NCBI GenBank assembly: GCA_029953675.1
Contig: JAMWBK010000010.1
Span: 1,178,001 to 1,242,000, forward strand
Reading direction: 5' to 3'
DNA: 64,000 nt
From: Rhodosorus marinus CCMP1338
Lineage: Eukaryota; Plantae; Rhodophyta
Under the pieces are notes generated by a model. It did not search any database, had not been told where the DNA came from, and was given only the letters and a program-made list of their open reading frames with translations. Made by a program: the position numbers and the translations under genes. Below are positions 17,224-20,950 of the stretch, piece by piece; positions within the stretch are counted from its first letter, which is position 1, and each line of letters opens with the position of its first letter.

Positions 17224-18760
17224 ATGGTAGGCAGTGAGTTCGAGTACAGTGAGCACCCACACAGGCGCTACAATCCCCTTCGAGGGGAATGGATCCTTTG
17301 TTCTCCTCACCGGGCGAAGAGGCCATGGCAAGGAGCCACCGAAGAGATTCCTCCAGGTACGGAGCTGAAGCTTAAGCTTGTGGTGGGATAACTTCGCTTA
17401 AAGCGCATTTGTGTTCTACGATGCGCAGATACAAGGCCGGAATATGATCCGAATGACTACTTGGGCCCAGGAAATTTCCGGTCCGGGGGCAAAGCGCAGA
17501 ACCCTAACTATACAGATACGTTCGTTTTCGACAACGACTTTATGGCGCTACTGCCCGATACACCGGACGGATCTGTAGGGGAGTACGTTCCTTGCTCACC
17601 GAGCTCGTCGAGCTCGACCAGTGTTTTCTTTGAAGATGGACTGAGCTGTTGTTGCTTTCAACAGAATCGATAAGGGCGATCTGTTCGTTGCCAGGGCCGT
17701 TAAGGGGCGATGCAGAGTGGTTTGCTTCTCTCCCAAGCTAAACTTGACGATTCCCGAGATGGAAAGGGAAGACGTTGTCAAAGTTGTACGTGCTGATGGA
17801 ATGCTCTTCAGCCGCGCATGCTGCTCTGCTTAACTCGAAGGCTCGTTTGATCAGGTTCATGCATGGACTGACGAGTTTCTCCGCCTTGCGAAAGAACCCT
17901 ATATCAACTATGTACAGATATTTGAGAACAAGGGAGAAATGATGGGATGCAGCAACCCTCATCCGCATGGACAAATATGGAGCAGCGGGTTCATTCCTGC
18001 AGAGGCTAAGAAGGAGCTCGAAAATCTCAAAGCATATGAGGAGAAGCATGGTGTCGGCATGCTGGAAAAGTTCGCCAGCCTCAGCCATTACTGAGTCTCG
18101 GGTGTGATTGACGGGCTAACCGTGCTTTTTTTTGTGCTGAATTGAGCAGATACGTCCAAGATGAACTGATCAAAAAGGAGCGTATGGTTTGTCAAAATAA
18201 CAGCTTCCTCTGCGTTGTCCCGTTCTGGGCTTTGTGGCCGTTTGAGGTAAGGATTACTGCGTGTAGATCGCCAAGTGTACTGCTACTGGCGCTCAGGTTT
18301 GCTATGGACCTGTTTCGCAATAGACGATGGTGATTTCGACGGAAAAGGTTGCGAGTCTTGCGGAGATGAGCGACAGAATGAAGGAAGATCTGGCTGATAT
18401 ATACCAACGAGTTACTTGTCGATATGATAATCTGTTTAAGACCAGCTTCCCTTACTCGATGGGACTTAGACAATGCCCCACGGACGGGACCTCGCACCCC
18501 TACTCTCACTTCTACATGGTGTTCTATCCTCCTCTTCTACGCTCAGCAACGGTGAAAAAATTCATGGTGAGTAGGGGGACAAAGCATGACGAGACTTGGG
18601 ACCAGGTTCTTCCGGGATGCATTGACCAAATAGAGAACCTGCACTCTGTTTTTCTTAGGTTGGCTTTGAACTGCTGTGCGAAGGACAGCGCGATCTCACG
18701 GCCGAACAGGCAGCGGAGCGGTTAAGAAACTTGGACGAGGTTCACTACAGAAAGAAATAA
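17224..18760 (+). CDS. GALT: Galactose-1-phosphate uridylyltransferase (class I, HIT-type), ~7 exons
   Basis: [62 protein letters not shown] (catalytic HPH), [39 protein letters not shown]. Confidence 0.96.
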
Positions 18761-19280
18761 CTCTCCCATACTACCGCGAAAGGGCCCAGGCTTGAGCCTT
18801 CGTACAGTGAACCCTAGTGGTCGTTTTTGGAACACGACACATTCCGAGTAAAACCTTGAGTTCCTAGCACTTGATAAAGGCAGAATTGGCCTTCGAAGGC
18901 TCAACTCCATTTTATCTCCATTCAATATTTTCAATCCAATAGAATCGATAGAATGTTTTTTTCTGCATATCAATAATATAAGAATTCTCAAGGGATGCTT
19001 TTTTAAAACGGAGATCAATATTATTCCCCAATAAATAAGAATAATGTAGAAGAATATGTTTTTCATAAGATATTCTCGTATATTTAGCCAATGGATTTTG
19101 GCAGACGAGATATGCTTATTTTTCTAATTAGTTTCTTGAGTCAATGAGATACTTGTTGAAAGCGAGGATTCGATTGCGTTGATTGGGGAGGATCGAGCTA
19201 GACTGTCGGTATCTGACGGGATGGTGACGGGTTGGAGTTAAAAAGTGAGCACCGGAGTTTCGATCCATAGGAAATAATCA

Positions 19281-20950
19281 ATGACGACCACAGGTGCGTG
19301 GAATTCTGGAAGATCTCCGTGGCTTGCTTTTGCTTCAACCCCCACTCTCGGTCATCTCGGGTAATAAGGGAGGAACTGGATCTTTGGATGGCGTGAACCC
19401 AGCGAAGCCGATCTTGGTTGAGTGGGAGCATTGATATTTTTAGAGCCTGAGGATATAGTGTTTCGTTCATTTTTGCTTCAGATGCGATTAGTCGCGCGAA
19501 AGCGTTGTTCAAGTCAAAATTTGGAGCAGATGCTGAGGTTGGTGGAGCAGCACCAGGCAGGGTGAATCTTATAGGCGAGCATACAGATTACTGCGATGGA
19601 TTTGTATTCCCGTTAGCATTGCAGTTCAGTACTGTAGTCCTCGGCAGGAAGAATCCTGAACACGCGGGTACTGTAATAGTCTGCAGTGAAGCGCAAAACC
19701 AAGAAACAATAGAATTTGCTGTAAGTTCAGCCGAGTACTAGGATTCTCAATTCGGGTGTTTGTTACAAATTCAGCTCTAACTCCCTATGAATGCGCAGAT
19801 GTTAGATGGCATGAAGGCAGGCGAACCTGCCTGGACCAACTATATTAGGGGCATGGTGTCTATCTATCGAGAAAACGGTTTTGACGTGCCTGGGTTCGAC
19901 GCTGTTGTTTGTACTGATGTACCAATTGGTGGCGGAGTGAGCAGCTCCGCAGCTTTTGAGGTGAGTCTGACGTTTGCGTATTGTCACTGATGCGCATTTC
20001 CGCAGTGAAGACATCGGCACTCTTCTCAACTGGACGTTGCCGCTGTACTATACACAGATGTCTAGCGGGATCTTCATTGAAGAGCTGTGCAAGAAGACTG
20101 TGGAAAAGGAGACTCGCGCGCTGTGGGGCCAAAAGTGCGAGCACACATTCGTCGGGCTCATGTGCGGGATTATGGACCAGATGATCTCCTCGAAAGCGAC
20201 GCTTGGTCATGCGCTTCTTATTGATTGCAGGTAACTCCTCCTGATCACTTGAAATTCGCTCCTGCTAGATGATTCTAAGTGTTCAAAACCTTAAACAGGT
20301 CACTGGAATGTGAGGAAGTGCCACTCACAGATCCTGGAGTCTCTGTTGTAGTGTGCAACTCGAACGTCAAGCACACGCTTACGGGTTCCGAGTACCCGGA
20401 CCGTGTTAGACAATGCAAAGCCGTCGCAAGCGCGATAGGCGTAAAAGCACTTAGGGATGCGACCATGGTAGGACCGCTAGCTACCAGCCGCTGAGGTAGT
20501 TGATTGCGTACTTAGCAGCTTTTTCTTGACTTACAGGAATCGCTGAATAGTGTCAAGGACAAGCTTTCGGACGTTGAGTATCGAAGAGGCCGCCACGTTA
20601 TCACGGAGGACAATAGAGTCCTGGACTGCAAGGATGCTTTGATTAGCAAAGACTATCCTAAAGTGGGAACCCTTATGACAGCCAGTCACGCCAGTCTAAG
20701 GGACGACTACGAGGTCAGCATACCCGAGATCGATTTTCTGGTTGAATTGGCCAACTCTTTCCCAGGGGTGTTCGGGTCTAGGATTACTGGAGGTGGTTTC
20801 GGAGGCTGCACTGTTACACTGGTCAAGACCGAGAACGCGAACGCCCTGATGGAGAAAATGTCCCAGGATTACCATGCCAGGTTTGGTGTGAAGGTCTCGT
20901 CGTTCATTACCAGCCCGGGCTCTGGAGCTCACCGGGTAGATATGTCTTGA
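19281..20950 (+). CDS. GALK: Galactokinase (GHMP kinase, GALK1/bacterial-like type), multi-exon; first mini-exon MTTT at 19281-19293 is inferred
   Basis: [78 protein letters not shown]. Confidence 0.96.

Follow-up and report, generated by a model that had tools for sequence, protein, structure and literature searches.

Background

Genes of the Leloir pathway lie side by side in two well described settings. In fungi, the GAL clusters (GAL1-GAL10-GAL7 of Saccharomyces and Candida, and an independent cluster in Cryptococcus) consist of adjacent Leloir genes with promoters of their own, among them the kinase and the uridylyltransferase that stand on either side of the toxic intermediate galactose-1-phosphate. 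In bacteria, gal operons such as galETKM of E. coli and the pairs of Chloroflexota, Bacteroidota and Gemmatimonadota carry galT and, after a short spacer on the same strand, galK. Here we analyze a pair of neighboring genes for galactose-1-phosphate uridylyltransferase (GALT) and galactokinase (GALK) in a 64,000-nucleotide stretch of the red alga Rhodosorus marinus CCMP1338 (contig JAMWBK010000010.1, positions 1,178,001 to 1,242,000), referred to below as the window, in which all coordinates are given.

This locus resembles the fungal clusters in that its Leloir genes are likewise adjacent, apparently with promoters of their own, and in that the kinase and the uridylyltransferase flank the same toxic intermediate; it differs from them in comprising two genes only, with no epimerase or mutarotase gene detected in the window. 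With the bacterial operons it shares the order galT-then-galK on one strand, whereas its genes are separate transcript units with six and five spliceosomal introns and a 520-bp spacer, and its proteins nest among those of red algae, with a GALT that lacks the Cys-x-x-Cys/His zinc site. An initial annotation of this DNA had proposed either an independent eukaryotic metabolic cluster or a domesticated, intronised operon fragment. The explanation that we consider rather probable, although far from assured, is a lineage-specific juxtaposition of native red-algal genes, the selective value of which is unproven.

The GALT and GALK genes and their transcripts

The GALT coding sequence extends over positions 17224-18760 of the plus strand and, in a hand-built model, is divided by six introns into seven coding exons (17224-17356, 17429-17582, 17665-17785, 17855-18069, 18150-18246, 18324-18566 and 18659-18760) that encode 354 amino acids. 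The GALK coding sequence, specifying a galactokinase of the GALK1 type, occupies positions 19281-20950 of the same strand and was also modeled by hand, with five introns and six coding exons (19281-19293, 19482-19720, 19799-19960, 20058-20230, 20299-20467 and 20537-20950) that encode 389 amino acids. All introns of both models have GT-AG boundaries; those of GALT measure 69-92 bp and those of GALK 68-188 bp, and the first GALK exon contributes merely 13 nucleotides of coding sequence. The two genes are immediate neighbors in a head-to-tail arrangement, with 520 bp between the coding regions. The initial annotation had placed the end of GALT at 18760 and the start of GALK at 19281, and its genes, coordinates, introns, order and orientation agree with these models.

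Two transcript contigs from a related R. marinus strain sequenced in MMETSP, L008 for GALT and L009 for GALK, were aligned to the window. L008 is colinear with positions 16606-19068 and leaves out exactly the six predicted GALT introns, and L009 maps to 19215-21539 and leaves out exactly the five predicted GALK introns, so that the exon-by-exon alignment confirms all splice junctions and both start codons. GALT and GALK are transcribed as two separate mRNAs, as observed in the separate contigs of the related strain; the alignments of L008 and L009, the ends of which are not mapped termini, contain no sign of a dicistronic transcript.

The same alignments outline the untranslated regions (UTRs). 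The 5' leader of GALT (16606-17223, plus strand), placed from nucleotides 1-637 of the related strain's L008, comprises about 618 nt and appears to be unspliced, as a high-scoring segment pair between L008 1-770 and window positions 16606-17356 (76% identity) runs straight from the leader into exon 1. This leader is unusually long, contains a small open reading frame (ORF) at its start and shows about 76% nucleotide conservation, compared with about 92% in the coding exons. The partly AT-rich 3' UTR of GALT spans at least 308 nt (18761-19068, plus strand), the 3' part of L008 fitting 18658-19068 with 83% identity. For GALK, the 5' UTR covers at least 66 nt (19215-19280, plus strand; nucleotides 1-79 of L009 fit 19215-19293) and the 3' UTR about 590 nt (20951-21539, plus strand), the L009 alignment extending to 21539. 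A stretch of about 146 bp (19069-19214, plus strand) separates the two contigs and is present in neither of them; judging from the assembled contig ends, it is the likely site of a putative GALK core promoter. A minus-strand ORF in the spacer (18722-19066) was not taken as a gene; it has no Pfam match and consists of AT-rich UTR sequence.

An assembly error that joined two unlinked genes would also produce an apparent pair. This explanation is extremely improbable, given that the intergenic DNA passes smoothly from homology to the GALT 3' UTR (up to 19068) into homology to the GALK 5' UTR (from 19215), with no repeat or break in composition between the two genes.

Both genes are intact, nuclear and ordinary. 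Their best protein matches are transcript products of R. marinus, with 95% identity for GALT (P0001) and 94% for GALK (P0121), followed by Bangiopsis (73%) and Purpureofilum (68%), both members of the Stylonematophyceae, and then by other red algae; these matches place the window in a Rhodosorus-like alga of that class, and the red-algal origin that had been suggested for this DNA is thereby confirmed. The protein identities of 94-95% also indicate that the window stems from another strain or species than the strain used for the MMETSP transcriptome. The published genome of R. marinus CCMP1338 comprises 31.2 Mb, 8,392 genes and 24,821 introns (PMC10250338), and the short, frequent introns and tight gene spacing of the window agree with these data. 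The same paper also describes long reads of Chroodactylon ornatum and short reads of Tsunamia, Rufusia, Stylonema, Chroothece and Bangiopsis subsimplex. With about 3.7 kb per gene, this genome is compact, and close spacing of genes is normal in it.

Conserved features of the two proteins

The GALT protein is a full-length member of the class I uridylyltransferases, matching nearly the complete Pfam profiles PF01087 (GalP_UDP_transf, profile positions 2-184 of 184, E-value 2.9e-64) and PF02744 (GalP_UDP_tr_C, 2-163 of 165, E-value 2.9e-59), and it aligns end to end with the enzymes of E. coli (1HXQ, 371 bits) and human (5IN3, 360 bits). The catalytic motif H-P-H-G-Q is retained in alignment with E. 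coli 1HXQ, in which it contains the nucleophile His166 and Gln168, and across the 120 aligned sequences neither of the two histidines, His164 and His166, varies.

By contrast with the E. coli enzyme, both metal sites are missing (codons 17455-17466 and 18513-18521). At the first of them, the zinc site formed in E. coli by Cys52, Cys55 and His115, the window protein has Asp, Gly and Leu. Asp, Gly and Leu or Met occupy these positions in 41 of the 43 sequences of the red-algal clade, that of the window included, with Cyanidium as an exception, whereas Cys52, Cys55 and His115 are present in every one of 75 bacterial-type GALTs. At the second site, Tyr and Val stand in place of His296 and His298, a change found among red algae only in Rhodosorus and Bangiopsis and, independently, in the opisthokont Amoebidium. 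In human GALT, too, the Cys-x-x-Cys/His zinc site is not known to be conserved, and the metal sites were therefore not treated as defining features of eukaryotic GALT.

The GALK protein contains, as full-length Pfam matches, the three domains of a galactokinase, PF10509 (GalKase_gal_bdg, E-value 4.7e-20), PF00288 (GHMP_kinases_N) and PF08544 (GHMP_kinases_C), and four catalytic or ATP-binding motifs, including GGG-x-SSSA, CGIMDQ and GGGFGG, are conserved with human GALK1 (6Q3W). Its score is 351 bits with that human protein, 224 bits with Lactococcus GalK and 92 bits with yeast Gal1p, and by these scores it is of the animal GALK1 type, which sets it apart from the kinase of the yeast cluster. 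Intron 5 of the gene, in phase 0 between the residues DATM and ESLN, coincides exactly in position and phase with intron 2 of the Galdieria partita GALK gene. The Cyanidiophyceae, to which Galdieria belongs, are usually viewed as the earliest-branching red algae; on that view, the shared intron would most simply have been inherited from early red algae.

Native ancestry and the operon hypothesis

Separate phylogenies that include bacterial homologues, suggested in the initial annotation as a check, were constructed by neighbor-joining and place both proteins within red-algal clades. The window GALT groups with Rhodosorus and Bangiopsis, in a position sister to the florideophyte and bangiophyte sequences and with Cyanidium outside, and the GALKs of red algae form a single clade that consists of Rhodosorus with Purpureofilum, the Porphyridium group, the Hildenbrandia group, Galdieria and Cyanidium. 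Within both clades the branching follows the red-algal classes. Because the red-algal clades, the Asp-x-x-Gly signature of GALT and the GALK intron in common with Galdieria all point in the same direction, we conclude from these sequence comparisons that both genes are native to red algae and were vertically inherited within them. The orthologues of other red algae are 59-66% identical for GALT and 50-53% for GALK, with the zinc-site replacement in common (except in Cyanidium).

In the same neighbor-joining analysis, the sister of the red-algal GALK clade is a bacterial group that includes Planctomycetota (Phycisphaerae), with P0131, P0149, P0167, P0210 and P0218 among its members. Sequences of this planctomycete-containing group score equal to animal GALK1 against the window protein, at 48-49% identity. 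The grouping hints at an old transfer of GALK between eukaryotes and planctomycetes, in either direction, which would concern all red algae and one gene only.

The gene order invites the idea that the pair is the remnant of a bacterial galT-galK operon which was transferred to the alga and gained its introns later. Such pairs are common in bacteria: co-oriented galT and galK occur at 45 of the 67 metagenome loci retrieved with GALK and at 38 of the 80 GTDB loci retrieved with GALT, and the planctomycete-containing sister group of the red-algal GALKs might be read in the same sense. A transferred operon would, however, be expected to leave proteins nested among bacterial ones, whereas both proteins lie inside red-algal clades and both genes track the phylogeny of the red algae. 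The signature at the GALT zinc site separates the Rhodophytina from all 75 bacterial-type sequences. Nor do the bacterial relatives supply a donor operon: galT is missing next to the closest bacterial GALK, that of a planctomycete, a bacterial GALT that branches near the eukaryotic group (P0056) is part of a lacZ-galT-galE arrangement without galK, and the top bacterial relatives of GALT come from another phylum than those of GALK. The window GALK is no farther from animal GALK1 than from any bacterium, and the proteins encoded by bacterial galT-galK pairs are no closer to those of the window than unlinked bacterial or animal homologues are; the Chloroflexota pairs with galT preceding galK, for instance, reach 54-56% identity for GALT and 45-46% for GALK. 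Operon descent would further imply co-transcription and the absence of old eukaryotic introns; the two genes are instead represented by separate transcript contigs, and one GALK intron is in common with Galdieria. Taken together, the clades, the loss of the zinc site, the Galdieria intron, the unlinked bacterial relatives and the separate transcripts run counter to the proposal of a domesticated operon fragment, which we consider very unlikely.

Adjacency in other lineages

Gene neighborhoods were compared in flanks of at most about 10 kb per side around the orthologues (less at contig ends), with the fetched loci re-checked by tblastn, in the Cyanidiophyceae, Porphyridiophyceae, Bangiophyceae and Florideophyceae. 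Synteny of this kind had been named as a check when the pair was first noticed, and in six other lineages from these four classes the adjacency is absent. No GALT was found within about 10 kb of GALK in Porphyridium purpureum and Galdieria partita, and no GALK within the same distance of GALT in Agarophyton chilense, Pyropia vietnamensis and one further contig with a GALT of the red-algal clade. In Hildenbrandia rubra both loci were fetched and lie on different contigs of one run, and in Cyanidium caldarium, as deduced from locus tags and contig sizes, the two genes are likewise on different contigs. Thus, unlike in Rhodosorus, GALT and GALK are unlinked in Porphyridium, Galdieria, Cyanidium, Pyropia, Agarophyton and Hildenbrandia.

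Beyond red algae, the GALK locus of the diatom Cyclostephanos (L163) has no GALT within 10 kb. A scan of metagenomes with GALK recovered chiefly bacterial galT-galK loci, and the four intron-bearing or eukaryote-like contigs among the hits (L019, L069, L070 and L078) contain no GALT detectable by tblastn. A search with the last GALK exon (137 amino acids) as a query, aimed at genomic contigs of other Stylonematophyceae, returned only a Rhodosorus transcript fragment and a 61%-identical fragment on a 1.5-kb contig that is too short to include neighbors.

In Galdieria partita (BQMJ01000024.1, L010), a GH35 beta-galactosidase gene (13891-16812) is situated some 2.5 kb away from GALK (10001-11336), and the interval contains an alcohol-dehydrogenase-like gene and another, small gene. 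Possibly this heterotrophic red alga has a different neighborhood related to galactose.

From this distribution we infer that the adjacency is derived and not ancestral. A single rearrangement, which would date at the earliest from within the Stylonematophyceae, would have brought GALK to its position behind GALT in the ancestry of Rhodosorus. The converse is a pairing that dates back to the red-algal ancestor or further, was retained by this lineage alone and was lost independently elsewhere. It can draw on the position of the Stylonematophyceae as an early branch within the Rhodophytina and on the poor conservation of gene order in red algae, with which repeated loss would not be impossible. 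It requires, however, losses in the Cyanidiophyceae, Porphyridiophyceae, Bangiophyceae and Florideophyceae in place of one gain, and we regard it as unlikely.

Chance and selection

In the Leloir pathway, GALK converts galactose to galactose-1-phosphate, and GALT converts galactose-1-phosphate and UDP-glucose to UDP-galactose and glucose-1-phosphate. The likely role of the two enzymes in red algae would be the salvage of free galactose from galactolipids, from galactans of the wall or mucilage and, where present, from floridoside. The initial annotation had stressed floridoside and wall galactans as a reason why the pairing would matter; the floridoside part of this argument is a loose fit, as the compound occurs in some genera of the Stylonematophyceae while the main soluble carbohydrates of the class are sorbitol and digeneaside (PMC8523428).

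Each gene would be transcribed alone, the GALK promoter falling within about 150 bp behind the GALT 3' UTR. Tandem neighbors separated by such a distance might have a chromatin state in common, and their expression could be coupled. The literature on yeast proposes such an effect as the advantage of GAL clustering (PMC3178652, PMC6785257).

A search for a promoter element common to the regions upstream of both transcript starts found just matches of 8-15 nt, at chance level. Two such matches are GGATTCGA..TTGATT, at 16562-16580 and 19166-19184, and GATTGGGGAG, at 16201-16215 and 19181-19195; they were noted some 20-50 bp ahead of the points at which the two transcript contigs begin. As evidence of a common promoter element they were rejected, any 8-mer being expected about twice per window by chance, and they are a lead for promoter analysis at most.

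The main alternative to a juxtaposition of uncertain value is a selected GAL mini-cluster of two genes, whose formation in a red alga was independent of the fungal clusters and convergent with them. We treat this as a possible explanation, although not the probable one; its mechanism, put forward equally tentatively, is that one chromatin neighborhood couples the maker and the remover of galactose-1-phosphate and so limits toxic accumulation. In its favor, the two enzymes catalyze consecutive steps around a known toxic intermediate, a situation discussed for yeast GAL genes in the papers just cited, neither gene is disrupted and the catalytic motifs of both are conserved, and the transcript contigs are separated by no more than about 150 bp. 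In addition, with 8,392 genes in the R. marinus genome, the probability that this named pair is adjacent at random is about 2/8,392, or 2.4e-4. Taken by itself, the adjacency of this pair is thus improbable; the figure ceases to be compelling once it is considered that hundreds of consecutive-enzyme pairs could have been flagged, so that a hit now and then is to be expected, and the look-elsewhere effect is large for a reader of a whole genome. Tight spacing, moreover, is the norm in this compact genome, the adjacency is absent in the six other red-algal lineages, and the upstream matches do not exceed chance.

The number of genes also speaks against a selected cluster. The defining arrangement of a GAL-type eukaryotic cluster, adjacent non-homologous genes of one pathway, is present here with two genes only. 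When the 345 stop-to-stop ORFs of 70 or more amino acids on both strands of the 64-kb window were all swept with Pfam, no Epimerase, Aldose_epim, glycosyltransferase or other sugar enzyme family emerged, so that no GALE or GALM equivalent is present at the sensitivity of this sweep, as had been stated at the outset, and the GALT-GALK pair stands alone among unrelated genes. Neither Rfam families nor tRNAs were found in the window, and hence no RNA element is tied to the pair.

Weighing these data, we lean towards a juxtaposition that is neutral or at most weakly beneficial in a compact genome. Several points count against this preference. The chance probability of this particular pair is low, as given above. 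In fungi, Leloir genes provide the textbook example of clustering that recurs, and the toxic-intermediate hypothesis predicts the clustering of precisely these two genes, so that selection retains some plausibility. The neighbor-joining trees rest on top-hit sampling with no bootstrap support, and the synteny comparison covers four classes outside the Stylonematophyceae, Compsopogonophyceae and Rhodellophyceae, with the related Rhodosorus strain represented by transcripts. In its strongest form, the selective alternative states that a minimal GAL cluster evolved independently and that selection against the build-up of galactose-1-phosphate both joined the pair and kept it in the Stylonematophyceae. 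This we consider doubtful; if true, it would possibly be the first non-fungal eukaryotic case of convergent clustering of Leloir genes, and the toxic-intermediate hypothesis would have been tested in a different kingdom.

No description of GALT-GALK linkage in red or other algae was found in the open-access full-text literature, which accords with the earlier remark that no description of the arrangement in algae was known. The pair is a candidate minimal GAL cluster and, as such, a candidate addition to the known gene pairs and clusters of eukaryotic primary metabolism. If it proves conserved and co-regulated, the GAL cluster, the best-studied example of clustering in eukaryotic primary metabolism, would be extended from fungi to a red alga, and the case for toxic intermediates as a general driver of clustering would gain support. 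Since the adjacency is lineage-specific, it is best treated as a hypothesis and not yet as a metabolic cluster; the present result is mainly a clean annotation, together with the conclusion that the tempting reading as an operon relic is wrong.

Other features of the window

Directly upstream of GALT, on the minus strand, the Pfam sweep identified a gene for an oxysterol-binding protein, and the neighbor of the pair on the other side, downstream of GALK, is a gene for an S9 peptidase. Elsewhere in the window the sweep matched uroporphyrinogen decarboxylase, ankyrin-repeat ORFs, histone H4, a RabGAP-TBC protein and PPR proteins, as well as a Ty3-type retroelement and two copies of an ABC-2/PDR-type transporter.

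The transporter copies belong to a segmental duplication (43007-49470 and 58967-64000, 84-91% identity), the second copy of which passes the end of the window; in each copy a repeated element is followed by the transporter gene on the minus strand. The Ty3/gypsy-type retroelement (2805-5821, minus strand) consists of one long ORF with matches to reverse transcriptase, RNase H, gag/capsid and aspartyl protease, and beside it lies an inverted repeat of 279 bp (5658-5935 and 6090-6368, 98% identity). The region 40001-42000 is characterized by a G+C content of up to 0.56, an AT skew of -0.28 and many overlapping ORFs without a Pfam match, and a comparable AT skew is seen at 4001-6000, where it coincides with the retroelement.

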